DNA from: Pelomyxa schiedti
Taxonomy: Eukaryota > Protista > Evosea
Assembly: GCA_020536535.1 (NCBI GenBank)
Contig: JAHLWZ010000173.1
Span: forward strand, 1 to 64,000
Length of the DNA stretch: 64,000 bases
Direction: 5' to 3'
In this document: positions 5,583 to 40,660 of the stretch, piece by piece
How the letters are laid out: the number at the start of each line of letters is the position of its first letter
How positions within the stretch are numbered: position 1 is the first letter of the stretch
Notes under the pieces: generated by a model
The model's input: only the letters and a program-made list of their open reading frames with translations
Databases searched by the model: none
Told to the model about the DNA's origin: nothing
Program-made: the position numbers and the translations under genes

Positions 5583-8500
5583 TTACAGTGAGGGAAGGGG
5601 TGGCGTTATGGTATAACTTAGTGGCAGATTTAGTGTCTGAGATTGTTCTGTGGTTGTTGACTGTAGCGGTGGTGTTTCTGTCGGGGCGGTACTGAGTGCA
5701 GTGCTGTTTGTTGATATCTCGGTGTCTTGAGGTGGTGGTGCAGGGATGTCCAATGCAAGTTGTTGCATGATATCCGAGGTTAAAATGGTGGATGGGGATT
5801 GGTGCAATGTGGGGGGCGGAATCTCTGTTGTCAGGGACAGATCTAGAGGTGGTGCTGGTATCTCCTTGATGATATGCGCAAGTAAGACACTTGGCGACGC
5901 TACAAGATCCTCCAACGGAGGGAGTGGGATATCCACTTGCGGCGCAGTTGGTGCGGGAATTGCGGTGGCCCGTGGCTCCAAAGGCGGAATTGGAATCTCT
6001 AATGGAGGTGCTGTTATGGGAAGAGGAATTTCACCAGGGCATGTTGGAGCAGGTATTTCAGTGCCGGAGGATGTTGTAGGCTCGAACGTTTTGCTTTTGG
6101 GAGAATTTTTACGGAAAACAACAGTATCTATTTCCTCTCGTACTGTTGCTGAAATGTTCAGTTCCTTGATAAGATTAGAGCTACGTATTTTAACAGTGCA
6201 TAGTACGGTTTTTGCAGACTCGTGAATGTACTTGAAGTAGATGTTGAGTACTTTTGTCTGTATACAGTGTTAAACTCGAAGTAGTGGAGGGAGTTATTTC
6301 TATTATTATGTAAGTAATCATAGAAATGAAGATTTCTTACTGGATCGGATTGCAATTTTTTGTCCTTGGCAAGAGCTCTCACTTCCTGTATAAAAGAAAG
6401 ATCTAAAGGAAGTCAACAACTTGGAACGGTTGGAAAACAAACTTTCGGCTGCAAATTCCTTCCCAAGCCATTTCCTAAATGAGCTCAAAGTGGAGTCGTT
6501 TTTGAGGATAACATCCAGTCCTTTTGTGGTTAGTATTATCAAACGCAAAGGGAAGAAAAACCTGTGACCTTTTGACCCTGCTGGAAGGCCCACTTGGGTA
6601 TTAAATCAGTTTCAATTAGGTATGTTGTTTCTTTCACAGCTTTGTCAAAGATATGATAAGTTAGAGGACCACTTGAATGACTAGCTGGGGTAACTGCTGT
6701 TGGTGTAGAACTGAGAATGAAATTTGCATATTTTCTCTCTTTCATAATGTCACCTACTGACTTTTTATTCTTAGTTATTTATATTGTGGTTGCATTCATT
6801 CATATATCATTATGCCATCATGAAGTTAAGTGTTTTAAAATAGGTACACACTGATGTGAGAGGCCTTCTCAAGTCAGAGAATGACATACTTCTGGGAGAA
6901 AGCATGCCTGCTACTGACGAAATACACGTTGGAGCAGGAAGTGTGGCCGATAGAGGTGTGGGTGGTGGAAGTATCTCAGAAATTCGAGTTGGAGGAGGTA
7001 TTGAATCACTTGAAGCACATAGTGATAAAGGTGCTCCATCCACCAATGGTAGGGTGCTGGATTTTGTGCTCTCGTCAGACGGAGGTGGACAAATCGGGGA
7101 AAGAGGTGGAGGCGGGATATATTCCTGTGGGAGGGGAGGTGGAGGAATGTAAATTGAGGCACTGTCTGCTGACGATCCTATCGAGAATGTTAGATTGTAT
7201 GAAGGAAAACTGAATAACATTGTCTTATTTGAAGGCATACTTCTCTTTCTACCAAAGGATTCTGATGAGGAAAGTGAAGAAGCTGAACTAGCTATACTAT
7301 CCCTTCTCGCTATACTGTCCCTTCTTACGATACTATCTCTTCTCGGAAGAGGAGTTCCGTTCTTTGAAAAATACAGATGTGTTGGAGATGGTATCGGAAC
7401 GAATCTCGGAGAATCTTGGCGTGATTTTGCGTCACGTTGTTTCCACGCAGTAAACGATTCTCTTATCGAATCGGCATCGGGAATTGGAACTACTCTCGAT
7501 TAGAGAAGAAATCAGAAGCACAGTAATGCTTTAGGAGATGAAAAGTAGAGTTGAGAGTTGCAGGCGTACTTGGGAGTGGTTGCGGTAATGGAGGGGGAAT
7601 ATCGGCAGTCAGGTCAGGCTTTCCTATTTGTGTTTGTGATTGTGATTGCGATTGAACCTACAGGGAAATGAATTGTGGAAATTTCGTGTTTTTGGTACCA
7701 CTAGTGAGTCTTGCTTTTGCCAGTAGGCGAAAGCTGAAGATATCCTGTCACCCATCATCTTACGGGGGTCATTGCTGACAAGTACTTCACTACTGACACT
7801 GCGGGCTCTTACTCGTGCGGAGTTGCTCAAGTCGTTGGTTACACGGGCTTCAGAGGAACTTTTTCGAAGATCCCACCCACCAGTGCTCATGCCTACTTCG
7901 GCCTCGTCGCATATACTGCTGTCCAGACTGGCTGTTGAGTCACCATAGACCGAGGAATCAGTATATGAGGTGTCCGAACTTGTGCTGGAGTTATCAAATT
8001 CCAGTGATATAGGTGGCGATGATTGACTCAAAGTTTCTTGTGAGCATGCTTGTGAGTGTGATGAGGAGTGAATGCGAGTTGCATGTGAAGAGTGTGATGA
8101 GGAATGAGAGTGAGTGTGTCCATGCGGAGGTGAGCGAGACTCATGTGAGTGTGAGTGACTGTGGCTGTGACTATGGCTGTGAGAAGGCCTTCCCCTATCC
8201 CTTTTGATTTCCAAAGGAATTAGCACACCGTTTGGACTGTGAAGGAATGATATACCCTTCTTTACGCCTGAGGTCAACCTGATCCACAGAGCCCACAGAA
8301 CCACGGCGGCACAGAACCGACGATGGTGATTGCAAAATTCTTTGGGAAGCCGTTTTCCTACATCACCTCATATTAAAAACCACTGTAACAACAGCAGCAA
8401 CAACAACAATAACACAGCAAGACAGCAGCAGCATAAGAAAAAAACAGGAGGAATAAGAAGAAAATAAAGAAAAAGAAGATAGAGCAAAAATATAACCCTA

Positions 8501-17700: not shown

Positions 17701-19962
17701 CTCAAAAGCTCATTTGCTTCCAGATGATTCCTGCAACCCACTTGACGGCCAATGCACCTATACACTACGGGAGTCCTATGTTATTTTTCAATCCACCTGT
17801 GTGAAGGAAGGTAGTGAAAACCCAGTCAACCCCTGCCAGGTTTTTCTTGTCACAGTGTCAGTGTAAATTGAGAGCACATTTAGACGTTAAATACATCTGT
17901 CAGTATAACTGAATGGACAAATCGGTCCGATGACACTCCTTGCGATGACGGGCTTGACTGTACTGATAATGATGTTTGTCTATCTGGGAGATGTCAAGGA
18001 ACACCCAATTGCCATGACCTGTTAAATTGCACAAGTACTATCTTGAATTGCCAATTCTGCCTAATATCATTCAAAGCTGATCAATGCTCTCCTGCTGGTT
18101 TTTGTGAATTCATACTTGAGCAAGACTACTTCATTATCGATGGCACTTGCGTCACTGATCACGCACCCAATCCCAGCAATCCATGCAAGGTATGCTCACC
18201 TGATTCTTTTCCGCAATTAAACATGGGAAAAGGTTTTCGATAAAGAAATGAACTCAACAGATTGGTCGGATCTAAGTGGAACCCCCTGTAATGATGGTGT
18301 TGAGTGCACAATCAATGACGTTTGTATAGCTGGCAACTGCTTTGGCATATCAAATTGCAGTGACGACCTCAGTTGTACGGGTTGGCACCTCACGCTTCCT
18401 GTGGAATACTTAACCTTTCCTAAGCTGATTTTTGTCTTTCTACGGGGAAATGCCATTACGAAGTATTAGACGGCTTTGGACTGATCGACGGTAGATGCTA
18501 CCAAGAGGGAGATGAAAATCCGGACAATACTTGTGAAGTGATATCCTATGCATCTACTCCCTACATTATGACACTAAACCAGATCTTTGACCCTAAGTTG
18601 GGCAATGCTACTTGGAGTTTTAAAAGTGACAATACACCTTGTGATGATGGGGTTATCTGTACTACAGATGTATGTATCGCTGGAAAATGTGTTGGAACAA
18701 GTAACTGTGCAGATAATCTTAGTTGCACTGGTAAGACAATCTTCAGTACAGAGACAATCTCAAAACCAACAGATGATACCTGTTCGACTGAAAATGGGTC
18801 ATGTGACTTCCACTTAAGGGAAGGATTTGCCCTCATAAAAGAAGCTTGCTTTTTAAATGGAGAGGAAAACCCGGATAATTCCTGCCAGGTCAATCCTCAT
18901 ATTCTCAAATTTATTAACAATAAGAATATTTTTTAGGTTGTTGATTGCAAAATTAGTACTAACAGTTGGGCAAGAAAAGAAGATGGAACACTCTGTGACG
19001 ACTACAACAACTGCACCAAGAATGATGTATGTGTGTCTGGGTATTGCATTGGTGAAAGTTCCTGTAATGATACCTATTCATGCACTGGTAAATTTCACGA
19101 AGCTGAAAGCAAATCCCAATATTTTTCTACAGATGACCTATGTGAAAATAAATCGTGCTCTCATTCTCTCATACAAGGTTACACAATTTACGATGGACTT
19201 TGTCTCAAAGATGGCGATGAGAACCCTACACAACCCTGTCAAGTAGCCTCAGTTGTATTGTATCAACTGTTATCAATACGCATTCTACAGATTTTTGATG
19301 CGCAGTCTGTTTCATGGTTACCTCTAAAGGATGGAACCGAATGCAACGATAGGAATCCTTGCACGATAAATGATCAGTGCAATACCGGATTTTGTGTGGG
19401 AACCAGTTACAAATGCGATTCAGATTTGGCGTGCATTAGTACGTAAAAACAATAAGAAGCCCACTAATCATTTCAGAGTCCTACACTTGTGATGGAATAG
19501 GAGGATGCATTACTGAGGTACAACCTGATAAATGCCTCATTGATGGAATATGCTATTCCCTGCAGCTTTCCAACCCTGAAAATGAATGCGAGGTACTTAA
19601 TTGCACAATAACCTGCCATACTTACTTATTTCAGTTTTGTAGTCCCACATTTTCTCAAAGCTTGTGGGCAAGCTACGACCAGACGCCGTGCGATGACAAT
19701 AACCATTGCACAACAAACGACCAATGCTCGCACGGGAAATGCGTTGGTACTGCAATTCCCGGCTGCTCTCAATCCGGTCAGTACCATTTTCTATTTGTCT
19801 TTACCTAACAACTTAAAAGAGCCCAGTCCAGAAGACAACGACAATAAATTCCCGTGGTGGGCCATTCTCCTCATTGTAGCGGGTGGATCCTCAGCCATTG
19901 CCGGTGCCTCAATTGGTGCCCTCGTGGCAGTCCGCCGCTACAAAAAAAACCACCATGACTAG
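14740..19962 (+). CDS. Large Cys-rich repeat type I membrane/surface protein (CDDxxxCTxxDxC repeats, Dictyostelium CTDC-like)
   Basis: About 12 modules of about 80-85 aa. C-terminal TM FPWWAILLIVAGGSSAIAGASIGALVAV plus short tail RRYKKNHHD, stop 19960-19962. The start (MLFCRALVFLL) is tentative. Confidence 0.85.
15520..19770 (+). repeat. Tandem array of about 12 two-exon modules (about 300-370 bp period)
   Basis: Each unit has a phase-1 intron after C-T and a phase-0 intron after C-(Q/K/E). Consensus is WxNxxxxxxCDDxxxCTxxDxCxxGxCxG...C.D...CT|xDxC....C........I...C...G..NP.N.CQ|. Confidence 0.85.
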
Positions 19963-20030: not shown

Positions 20031-22734
20031 TCATTCCACTTTAGTTGTTGTTACTGTTGTGGGTTGTTGTATGTCACCCCCGGTTGCCTGTTGTGTTGGT
20101 ACTGAGACATTGGCTCCCTGAGTGGCACTCGATTCTTGGGAAGAAGCGGGAATGGAAACAGATGAAGGTGCGGGAGTGACTGTGGGAGTCGCATTTGAGT
20201 TTGCAGCTATAGTAGTTGCAGTTGCATTTGAAGTTGAAGTTGTAGAAGGGATTGGTTGGGGTCGGCTATTTTCGGGTGGGAGAATGGATGGGGATGTGGT
20301 ACTTGTAATCATTGCAAGTACCGCGGCTTCAAGGTCATTCCATAGCTGTGTTTCAATAGGGTCTACACTGGAAATCGTTGTTGCTGTTGTGCTGGTTGTT
20401 GACAGTTGTTGCTGGTGCTTATGAAGCTAGTGGGTGGAATGAAGTAAGGTTTTTGTTTTGGAAATGAAAAGCGGATCAATACCAGGTTGCGGATTCGGTA
20501 AACATTTCTTCTTGCATCAGAACTCACTGAGGCAACATCTTCAATAATGGAATCTGTAAATGAATAAAATAAGTTAGTGCCTTTTCCATTTCCTCTTTGG
20601 ATTACCTGTTTCATATGGAACAGAAAGATGGGGCAATAGCATTGAGGGCATTCTTGACAGAAAGACATCGGCTTCAATTGATGACATAGTTCTATGTAAC
20701 CAGTTGGACCACATTCCAGTAACTCCAAACTGCTCTCTCTGTGCGGGCTCTGAAAGAGGCGATAGAGGACTGAGCACCAGTGTTACTGGCTTGGTAACAT
20801 TACTGAAGAGGTATAAACAAGGTATAAGATACTTGAACTTCTAGAGCACCAACGACAGGGAGATTGTTGAAGAAATTCATTGTTGCTTCTACAGTCTCCT
20901 GTAAACACGGTCAGTCTAAATCCACTATACCGAAAGGAACAAGACCCGAGTTTCACCAGGAAAGCCAACTACGAGTGCTGCCCTGACCAATACAGATCTT
21001 TCTAACAATAGAAGTACGCAGCGTCGAATCATCTGGCCAATCAATCCACAATAATAAAAAAGACAAACTAACCTCAACAGTGGTATGCTTGCTCATATTA
21101 CTTAGTACTGTTTGTTCACAGCTCTCAACGCCAATGAATACCAGCCTGCATCCTGATTTTTGCATCAAGTCAGCAATTTCTTCGTCTTGCACAGTATCTG
21201 CTCTGTGTAAGGTTAGTACTTGCGTGGAAAATCATTTAGTCAGCCTCTTCTCATTCTCAACCCCACCCACTAACACTTGTAATAACCACCTCCCTCCTGT
21301 ATCCAATGAAGGTGTGCCTGACAAAAGCTTTCCAAACGACGTGAAGATCACGTTTTATAAGTTCAGTCAGGAATTCCTTTGCAACAGTACGGCTTATAAG
21401 CAGATTGTCATTGGTGAATAAAACCTATAGGTGTCAGGTTGAGACACTCACAGAAGCCACTAGTTACCCTTCTGAGGCCATCTTTCCATGGTGGGATACT
21501 ACTTATAGTCCTAAATATTGATTCGGGACTGCACCTAGTTACCTTGGGGGCAACAGCAGCATAGTCACAAAATGAACATCTAGTGAAGGTGTTGATATTC
21601 TAGAGTGCAACTCCGCCATACTTAAAAGGGCATCCTTGGCCAACTTGGACAGGGTACCAGGGAACTGGGAATGGAGGAACTGGAATTCTCGACCAATCAA
21701 CCTCACAGTCATTGGGTTCTTCTTCTAAAACTGGTACAGAAGGTCAAAGATATTACACCAAGGGAGGTAGAACTTGTGGGGATAGTGAAATTGCCAATAT
21801 TTCTTTGATACCAAGATACATTTGGAAGTTTTCTCCACTGGCCATCGTTCTAGTTGTGGCCCTGAGGAAAATAAATAGAAGAAAGGGAAATACCTTAAGC
21901 AAACTGTTGATCAATTTCGCCACAGTTCTTTCGCCATACAAACTTACTATGAGGTAGTCTACTGCTGAGTTGAAAGGCTCAGCTGAAAATAGTAAAGTGT
22001 CATTCAGTTCGAAATTATCAATTTCTTTTTCTTTCAAGTAAAGTTTGTAGGACCTGGAGAGAAAAATTATAATCTCTATCTCTGACAAAGGCAATGGAAT
22101 ACTTGAAGACACGCATTCCCCCGGCAATTACAATAATGGAGGGATTCACCAATTTTGCATGAAGAGCAATTTTTTCTGCAAACTGCCTTTATAAAATATC
22201 AGGAACTCTATCCCAAGTGTCTACTTTTGGGAACACACCAAGTGGCAGTTAGAGTTGTACTTAGCAGGAGTATCTTTGAGGAAGAGACTGCAGCCTCGAA
22301 CTGTGGTCGAGTGGAGCGGGAGTAGGAAAACATGACAGTGGTCGAAAGACCACAATTTCTCTCCACTTCTTGAGCAATGCGGGCAGCTCCAAGCATTAGG
22401 TGAGCATGTTTTCTTCCATTCTCAACAACACTCTGCGCTGCCTCTGCATTCTATTTTTCAATTTAGAGTTTCGGAGTGTTCAGGGAGGGAAAAAAAGAAA
22501 AGAAAGAACACCAACCTTTCCATTTGTAAAGTACTCACAAAGAAAAGGAATACTTGCAATATAACGACCTTCAACTAACAGAGGGTCGTCAATCACTAGT
22601 GGGTTCTCTAAAATCAAAGCAAGTGAGTCTCCCTGAAGAACTTCTTTCTTTTTCGGACTTGCACCATAAACCCATAATAAACAAAAAGCAAGGGACAAAC
22701 CAGCCATTTCCGAAGCACCAACAACAAGAGCCAT
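20031..22734 (-). CDS. Cobalamin-binding radical SAM protein (class B methyltransferase-like), multi-intron
   Basis: B12-binding-like ILLLSTT...AKLVNPSIIVIAGG; CxxxCxxC motif GQGCPFK|CSFCDY split by intron 21580-21621; FTNDNL, WKAFVRAD, LMQKSGCRLVFIGVES and LVVGFPGET; Thr/Ser-rich tail. Confidence 0.88.
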
Positions 22735-28655: not shown

Positions 28656-31600
28656 TTAGGCAACAAGTTTGGATTGGAAGGAATAGGATCCGCCTCCAAG
28701 GGTTTTCATTGTGCTGTGGGATTCCAGGTCGGTTGGGACATATACATAGGCAATTGTATTGTGTGGTATTGTAACGTTCATATCGAAGAGGAGGGTGGCC
28801 TCATCGAGTGTCCAGGAGCAAACGATGTCCCCGCGTATGCTGGTGTACGATGCGGAAACGTAACTGAGAGAAATGTGAGTGCGTGGTGCACGTGCTGGAT
28901 GGAATGGAAGAAGGAAGCAAAGAGAGCCCACACACCTGAGGCCCAGCGAGGGTCTTGGCGCAATCACAAGAGGGTTGAATGCTACTGAGGAAGGCAAAAG
29001 GTGTATCCCGGCAAGGGATGACATCACCCATTGGGCCACAGACCCGAACATGGGATGGTTGTGTGAGTAGGTGTTATCACTGTAGAACCAGCTTTCCTTG
29101 AAGTGAGCATTAGGAGGAGAAGGAGGAATAGGTGGGGGTTGGTTCTGAGATGCGTGTCATACCCATATCGTCGAGGCCCCTTGGTCGAGCATATACCCAA
29201 ATGAAGGGTAACTTTTTTGCTCTGCCATCTGCAGAGCGGTGGAGGTAGCACCCATGTCACTCAGAGTCAGCAGCACCCATTTTATGCCAAACATCCCACA
29301 AGCGAGATGTGCATCTTGTTTTGCAATATCCAGGAGGAGGTTGTTGTATGCAGAAGAAATGCTTCCCGTAGGTGTAATCCCCATGTACAAGGGCATGGAT
29401 TGCGCACATTGCGTCCCATTCCAGGAATTATCTTGTGCGGCATATCTTTGATATTTATTTCTCATAGAGGAGGGAATTAGATACAGGCCAAGGGTTTCAT
29501 CAAAAAACTGCGAATTGATCATGTCAGATATTTCTGTGGAGTGCACAAGAAAGTCTTCGGATTCGTCTGTTTTTTCAGTTGGTGAGAGCTGATGAGGTGA
29601 TGTTAAGTGCTACTGAGTACCATTGAAACCAAGGATTGAAGCAATCTGTGACATTGCCACCAGGTCTGCAAAAAGAATCCCCAACCCAGTCAGCTGGGTT
29701 GGACTTGGTTCTGTGATGTTGTTGGGAACCACAAATTATATTTAGGGTACCAATTGTCATCCAGTCTCCAAGACCTGATGGTAACAAAGGTTAAGGAAAA
29801 AAAAAACAGATGTAGGTTAGGTTCACACCATTTTGAACAGTATCCAAATTACTGAGCATTAATTGAATAAAGTCCTTGGCATACGGGTAGGCGAGCTGTA
29901 AAGCAAGCAGATTTCCATAGTATTGATACTGCTCCAATGCCAACTGGGGAAATACTGACTGCCAATCCACCGGCCCACTTCCATCTCCAAACCCATGGTC
30001 TGGCTTGCCGTTAAGGTATTACTCTCTAAATTAGGGCCAAACCGGCTATTCCATTATAGGGAGCACACTCAGTGAATCCACCATTTTGTCGTTGATCGTC
30101 ACTGAAATCACTCAACCTTTTGGCGTAAAATTGTGACATGTCAAATGTCAGCATCCCAGATTCACTGGTAGCAAGGAGATCTCCTCCATAACCAAATCTC
30201 TCTCGGTGTGGACAATCTTGTTAATTTCAGGTTATTGCATACATTCTCAGGAGGAAAATACCTGACTGAACAGCCATCAAATTAGATAGGAGTGTTGTTT
30301 GAAACATAGACCAAATTTGATTAAGAACTTCAGAAGAACATTCAAAAACTCCATTGGAACGGACATCAGCATGAATGACATAAGCAGAGAGCATGTCTTA
30401 AAGAAATGGTGGAATCAGTAAAGTTAGCAGTCAAGTAATTGACAAATACCAGTTGTAAGTGGAATTCCTAAAGCCGACATATCAACTTCAACATATTGAA
30501 ACCCATGCCAGGTGAAAGAAGGGAGGAAGTCAATGGCCTCTTCACTTCCATTAAGAATGTAGCTATCTGCCTCATATGAGAACTGACAAAGCACAAAGGA
30601 AAACAAACCTGTTTGATATGCAACATCAGGAGCACAGGGTCCTCCTACCCCTCTTCCCTTTATTTGACCAGCCACTGATGTCATAACATTCAAGCTCCCA
30701 TCGGAGTACAGTAATTCTCCATATCTCAGCTTGATTGATGCACCTGCAACTTAAAAAGATCTTGAGAGAATGGGACATACTAACAATCAGCTTACCTGGT
30801 TGTATCCCCTGCAAAGAAATTTGCAGTCGCACAATTCCAGCAAAATTTTTCCCCATGTTGGCAACGTAGATTGAGGTGGAACCAGGGGAGAGCCATGTAC
30901 TCACAGCCTGGAGAGGTGTGCTCTCAGCACTAATATATATGAGCATTAAGAGAAACGAAAACTGGGTGCTTTCTTCCCAATATTTTCTCTCACACAACCC
31001 ACCATTTCAAAGAGTAGGGAGCCCTCAACATACATTATCGGTGGAATTGAATTGGCCTCGAGCAATGAGAGGTCATCAAGAGCAGAGGGTGGTGCTGCTG
31101 AAGCAAGCTCCCAAGTTGTAGCGTCGAACTCGTAGTTAACCCAGTCTGGTGAGTGTAGAGTTTAATAAAGCGCGTTGGTTACAATATGAAAGAAAAAAAC
31201 CAGGCGTTTCAAGGCGTGAGTCGTAAATAACTCCCAAATAGCTGCCAAATTTTTACAAAAAGAAAAGAGTGGTTTATGCCAACATGTCATTAGCAGTGTA
31301 AGGTCCAGGGCCAACCGTCCAGCAGCTTTCTGTTTGCATGTTCTTGCATGGTGCAGTGTAGAATACTTGGGTAGAAGAACCGGTGTATTGAATTTCCAGC
31401 TGAGCTATAAGCTTAAATTTTAATTAATCATATAATACAGAAAAATGGATTCAAGATGAGAACTCTCATCTCTCACCTGGGGCCGTTCTCCAACAGCAAG
31501 ATAGTCACGTAAATTGAGGGAACCCCAAAACTGCAGTGGAAGCGGGTTGAAAAAGCCATTTCCAAGCTGCCAATTGAGTAAGAAAAAAAGAGGAAGCCTT

Positions 31601-38364: not shown

Positions 38365-40554
38365 TCAGTGGCCTAGCTTTGCCCAGAGGGAAGAGCGAGT
38401 GAGAATGAACTTGCGGAACCATAATAGGGTTTCGCGAGTTGGTGCCGAGGACGGCGGCAAGTCGTGGAAGATCTCTGCCAGTACTTCCTGTGACAGGCCA
38501 CGGTTCCTCATTGCATATTCCAGGTGAACCGGCGTTGTCAATAGGCCGCCTATTAGGTTCCCGGTTGTGAGAAGGTTCTCACCTGTTACCTCTGGGAACA
38601 CCTTCAGCAGCATCTTCCACATTGGAAACGAGATGTCTCCAGTCTTGCTGACCTGTTTTGTTTTGTTTTGTTTGTGTGGTAAATGGGGGTCTGGGAGTGG
38701 GTAGAAAACCTCAGCCAAATTGACATGAAAGTGGTGAATGAACCACTCGGCGCATCTCGTTTTTCCAGATTCCATAAGCTTAGAAAGTATCACACCCTTA
38801 TTGACAAGCTGCTCAGTAATATGAAACTCATGAATCAGCCGCTTGAGGACTTTGCTGCAACAGAAGTCTTGTTCGCAGATGTGAATGCGAAAGGAGACCT
38901 CCCCAGGAGTTAGACCCCCATGCGAAACAATCTGGGTAAGAAGGGGGCTCCAGCCACCTTGATCATCAAGTGCGGTCGCCAGTGCTTTCAACCACTGCCT
39001 CTTGATTTGCTCGCTTTGTGCTGGGAAAGCGAAGAGGTTCAACAAGAAAGCCAAGACAGAGTAGGTTGATGCACAAAGCGCCTTCGCAACAGTGACCTCC
39101 TTGATGATGCTCACGGGGATGTGCCGGAAGAACCACTTGATTCCTCTTACATCGCCGTAGTTGTAGTAGCCGCGGCACAGCGTTAGCAGAGCGGAATTTG
39201 CCTGTTCCGTGTCAGCTCCAACATTCTTTTCCATCACACTAAAGGTAGATTCTAACCAGTTAGCAACTGTGATGTTACAACGCGTCAGTGCCTTTATAAG
39301 GGCTTCCTTCCTGTGGGCTGGCGTAAGATTTACTACCCTTGAAAGCACCTTCACGCAGTTCAAGTCATCTTTGAAGTTCCCGCAGGCTTCAACAAATGTG
39401 TCAGGTTTGATTGATATAGGGAAATGCTCAACAACCCACTCAACAGATTCCAGGCCCTCAACCTCTCTCCACCACCACCTGATACTTCCCGTCAGTTGTA
39501 CACCTTGAGTATCCAACAGCCACTTTAGTGATTCCACGCTCGAAGTGTTGTCAGTAACTGTTTGCAGCGCCGGCTGATCAAAGTGGAAGTAGGATTTGAG
39601 CCACTGGAACGCCTCGATTCTTTCCCTCAGAGTCAGGCCGCGGTTGCTCAACACGCCCCAAGCAAACACCATCGGCGAGGAGGTCTCAGAGGAAGCTCCC
39701 CACTTCCACCCCTCTGGGAACAGCCCGACCAGCCACTTGATCATCTCCAGGTTGCCGCCAAACGAGAAGCCGCAGGGGTAGTCGAAGCCCAGGGTGTTGA
39801 AGGCCCAGCCGACGCCGAAGGAGCCCCACATCCACTGGGCCACGTCCAGCCGGCCCGCCGCGACCGCGGCCGCGAAGGGCGCCGCGAGGTCCCAGTTGTC
39901 GCGCAGGCGGAAGCGCGAGGCGACCCACTTGGCGGTCTCGAGGTGGCCGGCGCGGCACGCCTCGGAGAGCAGCGTGTCGTCGTGGTCGCGGTACTGCCCG
40001 ACGTCGACCGCGCGGACCTCGTCCCGCAGGTCGTTCTCGCCCGCGGGCCACGCCAGCCCCGCGGCCCGCGCCCAGGACGGCTCGCCCGGGCCGCCGTCGA
40101 CGAGCTGCTGGGCCATGGCCAGGTGGCCGCCGCCGCAGAGGCCCCAGAGGACGCTGAGGCACTCGCGGGTGCCCCCGCTGCCGTCGTGGGAGCGGTGGCG
40201 CAGGATCCAGCGGACGCACGAGGCGCTGCCGGCCAGCGCGGCGCAGCGGAGGTCGAAGTGGTGCGAGTGCACCTCCTCGTAGGCGGCCCTTGGGCGCGGC
40301 ACCACGTGGGGCGCGGCGGCCACGCCGCGGCACACCAGCGCCACGAGGGGGAACAGCGCCTCGGCCACGCCGAACGCCCACACGACGCCGGCGCGGTCCA
40401 GGAGCTCGGTGCTGCTGGTGAGCACCGGCTCGACGGCGTACTCCCACGCGACGCGCGATAGGGAGAGAATGGCGGCGGTCTGCCGTTGCCTGCACAAATT
40501 TGAGCCTGTTGCAGCGCTCGCCGCCCTGTCGGCGTTCTGTGCCTCCTGATGCAT
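38365..40554 (-). CDS. Intronless protein of about 730 aa with degenerate ankyrin-like repeats
   Basis: Single ORF with first ATG at 40554. Repeats include AALAGSASCVRWIL, LCGGGHLAMAQQL, LLSEACRAGHLETAKWV and AAVAAGRLDVAQWM. Confidence 0.8.
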   Translation of the reverse strand: MHQEAQNADRAASAATGSNLCRQRQTAAILSLSRVAWEYAVEPVLTSSTELLDRAGVVWAFGVAEALFPLVALVCRGVAAAPHVVPRPRAAYEEVHSHHFDLRCAALAGSASCVRWILRHRSHDGSGGTRECLSVLWGLCGGGHLAMAQQLVDGGPGEPSWARAAGLAWPAGENDLRDEVRAVDVGQYRDHDDTLLSEACRAGHLETAKWVASRFRLRDNWDLAAPFAAAVAAGRLDVAQWMWGSFGVGWAFNTLGFDYPCGFSFGGNLEMIKWLVGLFPEGWKWGASSETSSPMVFAWGVLSNRGLTLRERIEAFQWLKSYFHFDQPALQTVTDNTSSVESLKWLLDTQGVQLTGSIRWWWREVEGLESVEWVVEHFPISIKPDTFVEACGNFKDDLNCVKVLSRVVNLTPAHRKEALIKALTRCNITVANWLESTFSVMEKNVGADTEQANSALLTLCRGYYNYGDVRGIKWFFRHIPVSIIKEVTVAKALCASTYSVLAFLLNLFAFPAQSEQIKRQWLKALATALDDQGGWSPLLTQIVSHGGLTPGEVSFRIHICEQDFCCSKVLKRLIHEFHITEQLVNKGVILSKLMESGKTRCAEWFIHHFHVNLAEVFYPLPDPHLPHKQNKTKQVSKTGDISFPMWKMLLKVFPEVTGENLLTTGNLIGGLLTTPVHLEYAMRNRGLSQEVLAEIFHDLPPSSAPTRETLLWFRKFILTRSSLWAKLGH

Positions 40555-40660
40555 CACTTTCTTGTAACGACTTCTCTTGGGGAAAAAAAAAAAGTGCTTC
40601 AATCTAATCAATGTTGTGGGGTGTTGTTCACCCCCAGACCAAGCTTAGGCAACCCCACAT

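Follow-up and report, generated by a model that had tools for sequence, protein, structure and literature searches.

Within the window, the 64,000-nucleotide stretch of Pelomyxa schiedti contig JAHLWZ010000173.1 analyzed here, the region 20031..22734 of the minus strand encodes a protein of 639 aa plus a stop codon. Its spliced exons reproduce residue for residue the GenBank protein KAH3766062.1 ("radical SAM protein [Pelomyxa schiedti]", 639 aa; hereafter P0026, the query in all full-length searches), with 100% identity on the exons in tblastn. The initially predicted boundaries are exact: the A of the start ATG lies at 22734 and the stop codon at 20031-20033. The gene comprises 15 exons and 14 introns of 40-115 nt, 13 with GT-AG and one with GC-AG termini, which agrees with the genome paper (PMC8887013), where genes average 7.43 introns and 1.59% of introns are GC-AG. 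Removal of these introns leaves one open frame with eukaryotic neighbours on the contig. The original prediction of a spliced eukaryotic nuclear gene is thus borne out by the spliceosomal-type introns, the neighbourhood and the identity to the P. schiedti GenBank protein.

The exons, all on the minus strand and placed by spliced mapping, trace a two-domain enzyme with a C-terminal extension. An N-terminal Rossmann-type (B12-binding-like) domain with its linker (residues 1-235, 21684..22734), delimited from an AF2 model and alignments, begins in exon 1 (22701..22734), whose product MALVVGASEMA forms strand β-1, and continues through exon 2 (22516..22607), exon 3 (22239..22450, with the LLLSTTL landmark at residues 102-108), exon 4 (22103..22186, with IVIAGG, of which G135 and G136 are encoded at 22122-22117), exon 5 (21894..22053, with VDYLIVSLYGE, D173 to E182 at 21959-21930) and exon 6 (21774..21849). 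Exon 7 (21622..21730) ends in ...GQGCPF plus two nucleotides of the K256 codon, with C253 at 21632-21630. The radical SAM core proper (residues 248-410, 20872..21647) extends over exon 8 (21468..21579, starting ..CSFCDY, with C257 at 21578-21576 and C260 at 21569-21567), exon 9 (21318..21424), exon 10 (21073..21202; ADTVQDEEIADLMQKSGCRLVFIGVES...), which is the most conserved core exon, exon 11 (20946..21032; ..VVGFPGETR, with GFPGET at 20966-20949) and exon 12 (20833..20898). A W..H.TM motif marks the C-terminal domain in exon 13 (20606..20789), after which come exon 14 (20483..20553) and exon 15 (20031..20426). Exon 15 encodes the last part of the C-terminal helix, then a tail of some 120 residues rich in Ser, Thr, Pro and Ala (520-639, 20393-20034), and the stop.

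Three introns deserve individual mention. Intron 7 (21580..21621, 42 nt, GT-AG, phase 2) interrupts codon K256 inside the cluster-binding motif CPFKCSFC (residues 253-260), so that the intact CxxxCxxC split by an intron was correctly recognized at the outset; its position is common to all four Pelomyxa paralogs. Intron 9 (21203..21317, 115 nt) is the GC-AG intron, in which a TACTAAC motif resembling a branch point precedes the acceptor: it is the sole splice that yields ...WKAFVRADTVQDEE, the form seen in all homologs, and the GC donor recurs in the paralogs P0025 and P0004, with GT in P0001. Intron 1 (22608..22700, 93 nt, GT-AG, 40% T) is in frame, lacks a stop and holds GLSLAFCLLWVYG....

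This last intron accounts for the hydrophobic N-terminus AGLSLAFCLLWVYG of the original prediction, which is absent from the annotated protein and lies within 22700-22608. P0025 and P0001 have introns of 128 and 52 nt, respectively, at the same position and phase, neither a multiple of three in length, and P0004 has a 54-nt intron in the identical phase two alignment columns away. In the AF2 model the spliced N-terminus leads directly into strand β-1 of the Rossmann-type domain. Judged from this mapping and the paralogs, AGLSLAFCLLWVYG is nothing but translated intron. This segment was the support for the suggestion that the gene product methylates membrane lipids, as a membrane-anchored cobalamin radical SAM enzyme like HpnP or HpnR, and that suggestion loses ground with it. 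Class B lipid methylases are known, P0026 does weakly match HpnJ (79 bits) and a model for a ladderane-lipid radical SAM enzyme (71 bits), and the gene for one distant bacterial relative (P0009) shares its operon with those for a ketoacyl synthase and a UbiE-type methyltransferase. However, P0009 belongs to another clade, the HpnJ score is far under the cut-off of 577.6, BchE reaches 72.6 bits against a cut-off of 481, the HpnR model (cut-off 650) gives no match to P0026 at E <= 1e-8 and no HpnP model is present among its NCBIfam matches. We consider a lipid-methylating role improbable.

The radical SAM core is recovered with significance by Pfam PF04055 (66.1 bits, E 5.5e-18, gathering threshold 29.5), and the three cysteines C253, C257 and C260 are invariant among 49 homologs. 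The exons taken singly are far less informative: exon-by-exon Pfam scans were nearly blank, with exon 10 alone matched (Radical_SAM, E 0.0069), and a single exon gave nothing usable against the PDB. The AF2 model of the full protein is confident (pLDDT 91.8, pTM 0.92) and displays the two-domain class B layout, in keeping with the class-B-type core first read from the sequence. Its partial TIM-barrel aligns to many radical SAM structures (Z 13-23). The best VIA/Foldseek matches of the model are TsrM (6wte), MgmA (9ccb), CysS (9n1b-d), OxsB (5ul2-4), TokK (7kdx) and AprD4 (6fd2), with Z-scores of 19-23 and structural alignments that begin at residue 1 and cover 370-420 residues.

The N-domain is confidently predicted to adopt a Rossmann-type fold. 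The claim that it is B12-binding-like stands by its fold and its family profile; the single sequence falls short in Pfam, where PF02310 scores 17.5 bits on P0026 against a gathering threshold of 32.1. A low score is normal here, with the entire family sitting at the threshold, as the Pelomyxa paralogs score 17-32 bits and even a true PhpK-family member (P0006) just 31.3. A PDB search with just the first 240 residues of P0026 gave nothing usable; the family N-domain profile, on the other hand, can be aligned with the cobalamin domains of MgmA, TsrM, OxsB, CysS and TokK, including their GG and D..GEGE landmarks. P0026 retains the corresponding GG and D..GE landmarks, and also STT as seen in the alignment block. 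Among 49 family members, conservation is at least 90% for G136, D173 and E182 and 88% for G135 and G181. These five solved enzymes share the two-domain fold of P0026 at 13-19% identity but act on differing substrates (tryptophan, protein glutamine, carbapenem, nucleoside), none of which can be transferred to it.

We know of no strict cobalamin-ligand motif by which class B enzymes could be scored, and AprD4, a radical SAM 1,2-diol dehydratase, is reported to do without B12 despite sharing the class B fold; hence, the fold by itself is no proof of cobalamin binding. P0026 could likewise be a B12-independent enzyme in which the N-domain is a structural or substrate-binding relic, catalyzing a non-methylating radical reaction such as a dehydration, cyclisation or rearrangement. 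No PDB sequence matches the core better than AprD4 (E 1.5e-48 for profile A2, 2.5e-25 for profile A1), whose structural match (Z 23.1) also shares first place; the sub-threshold PF02310 score points the same way, and some families of class B architecture, such as BchE and HpnJ, are no simple methylases. Yet the family profile that fits the five cobalamin-containing structures begins to align with AprD4 only at the core, leaving the AprD4 N-domain unmatched. The AprD4 family model gives 39 bits on P0026 against a cut-off of 500, the low PF02310 score is the family norm noted above, and the GG and D..GE residues are conserved in an N-domain under purifying selection (dN/dS 0.13). A B12-independent enzyme of this kind seems rather unlikely to us. 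The use of cobalamin by P0026 is plausible, since its N-domain profile matches the five cobalamin domains and not that of B12-free AprD4, and since a B12-dependent methionine synthase (MetH) is also reported from the P. schiedti genome (PMC8887013).

Among named families, the nearest is that of the PhpK P-methyltransferases (TIGR04479), which four P0026 exons match colinearly, e.g. exon 9 at model positions 290-328 and exon 10 with 40.6 bits (E 1.1e-10). The full protein attains 176.4 bits against a cut-off of 600, as opposed to 502-621 bits for the true PhpK-family members in this analysis. P0026 shares with the PhpK/BcpD family the B12-type Rossmann domain, the CxxxCxxC core and the C-terminal domain with W..H.TM; it differs in scoring below the cut-off, in giving no indication that a phosphinate is its substrate or that genes of a phosphonate pathway are present, and in its position in a maximum-likelihood tree, where it falls outside the PhpK clade in a separate sister clade (99/97 support). 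As P0026 lies under every curated NCBIfam cut-off, no substrate can be transferred to it by homology.

In the same tree, P0026 groups with its three Pelomyxa paralogs and three further sequences in a clade of seven with 100/100 support; two of these three non-Pelomyxa sequences are on contigs with eukaryote-type neighbour genes. The contigs that carry the clade beyond Pelomyxa come from SRR22387900, ERR13493907 and JGI 3300006586. The sister of this clade is a protein from a PVC-group MAG (PXDI01000109.1; P0034) with 100/98 support, and both are nested inside a clade of anaerobes (99/97). P0034 and proteins from Dehalococcoidaceae, Desulfobacterota and Bacteroidota MAGs, which constitute the sister and outer branches around the P0026 clade, are its nearest relatives, aligning over the full length with identical domain order. 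They differ from P0026 in being intronless, in lacking the Ser/Thr-rich tail, in their low identity (<=32%) and in having no common gene context: among 64 scanned ORFs flanking the genes of 14 bacterial relatives, families recurred twice at most and phosphonate genes were absent. On these phylogenetic grounds, the P0026 gene is a long-ago acquisition from anaerobic bacteria. An Asgard origin was rejected, as the Heimdall and Hodarchaeales matches belong to a distant clade, and so was a giant-virus vector, for which IMG/VR gave just generic matches to the radical SAM core at <=34% identity. A primase adjoining the homolog P0021 found no named relatives in our search.

The Pelomyxa paralogs are 78% (P0025), 54% (P0001) and 36% (P0004, KAH3761466.1) identical to P0026. 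All four genes are located on different contigs among eukaryotic neighbours, and nine intron positions, with their phases, are common to all of them. The long Ser/Thr-rich tail is shared with P0025 and is not found in P0001 or P0004, and intron 1 of P0026 is in frame by chance. A comparison of P0026 with P0025 gives a dN/dS of 0.10 for the whole protein, with 0.03 for the core, 0.13 for the N-domain and 0.35 for the tail; these values are rough because dS is near saturation even between these closest paralogs. Together, the common intron positions and a dN/dS of about 0.1 indicate an old gene family under constraint. These observations bear on a further alternative, namely that gene transfer left behind a relic that is decaying or no longer functional, or else that a bacterial or symbiont contaminant was mis-assembled into the contig. 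In its favour are the bacterial type of the gene and the bacterial and archaeal endosymbionts harboured by Pelomyxa (PMC10579272). This alternative is already contradicted by the evidence and we hold it to be very improbable: the 639-aa frame and all motifs are intact under the constraint just described, 14 spliceosomal-type introns include positions common to the paralogs, the GC content of about 0.43 is that of the host, the flanking genes are eukaryotic and the best prokaryotic relative is just 32% identical.

The reading that we favour, and judge reasonably probable as a whole, joins these strands: a functional nuclear gene for a class B enzyme, derived from anaerobes, which would act as a cobalamin-dependent methyltransferase and belong to a group, as yet uncharacterised, that is sister to the PhpK P-methyltransferases. 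The gene would have passed from an anaerobic bacterium to an ancestor of Pelomyxa, followed by intron gain and then by duplication. In the probably cytosolic enzyme, C253, C257 and C260 are predicted to hold a [4Fe-4S] cluster at which SAM would be reductively cleaved to give the 5'-deoxyadenosyl radical. Cobalamin, seated in the N-terminal Rossmann-type domain, would be methylated by a second SAM and may then deliver this methyl to a substrate radical or nucleophile. The corrinoid could be obtained from food or from the prokaryotic endosymbionts of the amoeba. The Pelomyxa symbionts express CobD, CbiB and BtuF, and the supplement with these data also lists the P. schiedti protein KAH3764416.1 with EC 2.1.1.13 (PMC10579272).

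In eukaryotes, the well-known B12 enzymes are MetH and methylmalonyl-CoA mutase, joined in a few lineages by class II RNR, and class B radical SAM enzymes are, to our knowledge, regarded as prokaryotic. Our literature search found no paper describing class B radical SAM enzymes in a eukaryote, nor one on the P0026 family in Pelomyxa or the Archamoebae. The architecture of P0026 is not new, and the transfer of genes for anaerobic enzymes is well known in the Archamoebae. The interest lies rather in at least four intron-rich, constrained genes in an anaerobic amoeba, which suggest that oxygen-sensitive chemistry can persist in a eukaryotic cytosol, and, for enzymologists, in a sister group of the PhpK P-methyltransferases that awaits substrate assignment. 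The chemistry of the family probably needs B12, which would possibly add a new B12 requirement to a cell living with corrinoid-producing symbionts. More tentatively, and with the odds somewhat against it, Pelomyxa and a few other organisms may possess a native family of radical SAM methyltransferases that truly depend on cobalamin and are encoded by intron-bearing genes. If so, this would be a third kind of eukaryotic B12 chemistry beside the two principal ones named above (class II RNR apart), and the Pelomyxa enzyme would be fed by corrinoids of its methanogenic and syntrophic endosymbionts, tying host metabolism to the symbionts.

The minus-strand gene at 20031-22734 is split into many short open pieces, among which exon 10 alone was matched in an exon-by-exon Pfam scan (Radical_SAM, E 0.0069). 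With NCBIfam, four exons aligned colinearly on TIGR04479, the PhpK family of radical SAM P-methyltransferases, at model positions 290-328, 329-366 (40.6 bits, E 1.1e-10), 373-395 and 423-461. When exon 10 was searched exhaustively with HMMER against 1.8 billion representatives, 24 proteins came back, several at full length; a word search with the best of these (the paralogue P0001) as bridge query then led to three proteins under the NCBI name "radical SAM protein [Pelomyxa schiedti]". One of them, KAH3766062.1 (henceforth P0026), has 639 aa, is encoded on a contig of 73,979 bp and matches the window exons without a difference; this database protein was the query in all full-length searches. 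Exact spliced mapping places its start at 22734 and its stop at 20031-20033 on the minus strand and divides the gene into 15 exons; the 14 introns measure 40-115 nt, 13 of the GT-AG type and one GC-AG. The CxxxCxxC motif, originally predicted to be split by an intron, is intact as CPFKCSFC (C253, C257, C260), with the 42-nt intron 7 interrupting codon 256, and the radical SAM core, likewise upheld, scores 66.1 bits against PF04055 (cut-off 29.5).

Four Pelomyxa copies (P0026 and its paralogues P0025, P0001 and P0004) lie on different contigs of GCA_020536535.1, with eukaryotic neighbours such as an Arf/Ras/Roc protein, ankyrin-repeat proteins and a PPDK-like protein. Nine intron positions of identical phase are common to all four copies, including the motif-splitting intron and the unusual intron 9, so the introns predate the duplications. 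Intron density and GC-AG share agree with the published genome figures of 7.43 introns per gene and 1.59% GC-AG (PMC8887013). The GC-AG intron is intron 9 (21203-21317, minus strand), with a yeast-like TACTAAC motif close upstream of its acceptor; at this same position throughout, the donor is GC in P0026, P0025 and P0004 and GT in P0001. Compared with its closest paralogue, at 78% identity, the gene as a whole has a dN/dS of 0.10; the core stands at 0.03, the N-domain at 0.13 and the tail at 0.35, all of them rough values because dS is close to saturation. This tail, a Ser/Thr/Pro/Ala-rich stretch of about 120 aa (20034-20393, minus strand), evolves faster than the remaining protein; it is also present in P0025 and missing from P0001 and P0004. 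The 14 introns, the nine shared positions and the eukaryotic neighbours bear out a spliced eukaryotic nuclear gene, and the sequence comparisons point to a resident gene under constraint.

The hydrophobic N-terminus of the original prediction does not belong to the annotated protein: the segment AGLSLAFCLLWVYG falls within intron 1 (22700-22608), which was translated through because its 93 nt (40% T) are in frame and stop-free. Across the exon junction P0026 reads MALVVGASEMA followed by ENPLVIDD, and P0025 reads MALVIGAPEIAENPLVIEN. Counterparts at the identical position and phase occur in P0025 (128 nt) and P0001 (52 nt), lengths at which retention would break the frame; the 54-nt intron of P0004 is two alignment columns off, with equal phase. 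In the AlphaFold2 model the junction is a low-confidence loop (residues 11-15) behind strand beta-1, which would structurally leave room for a retained-intron isoform of P0026, compatible with the model though no evidence supports one. As the spliced N-terminus has neither signal nor anchor, the protein is most likely cytosolic. The proposal of membrane-lipid methylation has lost its sole specific support, since the hydrophobic segment proved to be an intron.

Residues 1-520, modelled by AlphaFold2 with 49 homologues, gave a confident structure (pLDDT 91.8, pTM 0.92). Its top structural matches by Foldseek and VIA-align are TsrM, MgmA, CysS, OxsB, TokK and AprD4 (Z 19-23, 370-420 residues aligned, starting at residue 1), with MiaB and RimO next (Z about 19) and then radical SAM enzymes of a single domain (Z 13-16). 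The first five, whose fold is like that of the model, were solved with cobalamin; AprD4 has the same fold yet is not known to contain cobalamin, and fold alone thus cannot settle cobalamin binding. The predicted B12-binding-like domain is accordingly upheld by fold and family profile and not by Pfam, with PF02310 at 17.5 bits against a cut-off of 32.1. In the main rival reading, which would draw on AprD4 and on this low score, the radical enzyme would work without B12 and its Rossmann domain would be vestigial. Weak PF02310 scores are nevertheless normal for the PhpK-like group, as P0006, a true PhpK-family protein (621 bits on TIGR04479), reaches only 31 bits. The family profile covers the cobalamin domains of MgmA, TsrM, OxsB, CysS and TokK, with the blocks "..iSttf", "viaGGp" and "vDyvv.geGE", whereas on AprD4 it aligns from the core onward only. 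P0026 retains these landmarks as LLLSTTL, IVIAGG and VDYLIVSLYGE; conservation across the 49 sequences is at least 90% for G136, D173 and E182 and 88% for G135 and G181. The profile alignment, the kept landmarks and the P0006 score lean towards predicted cobalamin binding, which we infer for P0026. A B12-dependent methionine synthase is reported for P. schiedti (PMC8887013), KAH3764416.1 is listed as EC 2.1.1.13 (PMC10579272, supplement), and the Syntrophus and Methanoregula symbionts of this species express CobD, CbiB and BtuF (PMC10579272); thus, cobalamin is plausibly available in the cell.

P0026 falls below every curated NCBIfam cut-off: 176 bits on PhpK (cut-off 600), 79 on HpnJ (578), 73 on BchE (481) and 39 on AprD4 (500), with no match to HpnR (cut-off 650) at E <= 1e-8. 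Among the genes adjoining 14 bacterial relatives no family is recurrent and phosphonate genes are absent, and no substrate can be inferred. We are highly confident that P0026 is functional, that it is a radical SAM enzyme with class B architecture and that its origin is bacterial. Its most likely mechanism is that of a cobalamin-dependent radical SAM methyltransferase, and cobalamin-dependent methylation itself stands at a roughly even chance or somewhat better. At 3194-5598 of contig L003, the gene for P0009, a distant bacterial relative from a clade different from that of P0026, lies in start-to-stop overlap with a UbiE-type methyltransferase, downstream of a ketoacyl synthase, in an operon that may be for lipid or polyketide tailoring. 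P0026, already in GenBank under a generic name, is not discussed in the genome paper (PMC8887013), where the term "radical SAM" is absent, or in the consortium paper (PMC10579272), where the term occurs once, in the reference list; for Archamoebae, the literature searched had nothing on radical SAM enzymes of class B. P0026 presents a familiar architecture in an unusual host.

In a maximum-likelihood tree (LG+C20+F+G4, 40 sequences, 539 columns) the four Pelomyxa copies and three homologues from elsewhere, P0038, P0021 and P0003, form a clade with 100/100 support, within which P0004 falls outside a grouping of P0038 with the other three Pelomyxa copies. The sister branch of this seven-sequence clade is a PVC-group MAG protein (100/98), beyond which comes a Dehalococcoidaceae protein (96/95). 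All are nested among proteins of Desulfobacterota, Bacteroidota and Chloroflexota, in a clade (99/97) that stands apart from the PhpK clade proper. The closest prokaryotic protein shows 32% identity to P0026, and the nearest ESM Atlas clusters are bacterial too. The simplest reading is that the gene was acquired once, long ago, from an anaerobic bacterium and afterwards gained introns and duplicated. An Asgard source was rejected, as the Asgard matches sit in a distant clade, and so was a viral one, viral contigs giving generic core matches only.

The P0038 gene (47% identity; contig L002, Logan ERR13493907, 2.4 kb, 68-1738) has an uninterrupted frame and converges on a RasGAP gene, a neighbour that makes this second organism carrying the family probably a eukaryote. 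The P0021 gene (39% identity; contig L001, Logan SRR22387900, 14.8 kb, 6159-7925) has no introns. L001 is gene-dense and intronless, with a cyclin, a PPP-type phosphatase and an AEP/UL52-type primase, most other ORFs lacking a Pfam match; its source may be an intron-poor eukaryote or a large DNA virus, and the primase as query found no named relatives. P0003 (contig L006, JGI 3300006586 metagenome) is really one full-length gene called as two ORFs, 3-554 and 592-1722, the upstream one matching B12-binding at 26.8 bits; the break falls at seven consecutive T, which suggests an indel of the assembly and not an intron.

Elsewhere in the window, an intron-split plus-strand gene at about 15.7-19.96 kb encodes repeated cysteine-rich modules (C..D...C T.D.C..G.C.G), of which the tested pieces had no Pfam match, and ends with a transmembrane helix plus a short tail of basic residues. 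This gene and the radical SAM gene converge, the stop of the former (19960-19962) lying only 68 nt from that of the latter. On the minus strand, an ORF piece at 29157-29546 clearly encodes an alpha-L-rhamnosidase domain of bacterial type (Bac_rhamnosid6H, 68.7 bits) and may be a further bacterial-type gene in this amoeba contig. GC content is 0.53-0.57 around 38-42 kb against about 0.43 elsewhere, with a second GC-rich stretch at 60-64 kb. The former contains a 748-aa uninterrupted minus-strand ORF (38365-40611) with weak ankyrin-repeat matches, an unusual length for an intron-free ORF in so intron-rich a genome.
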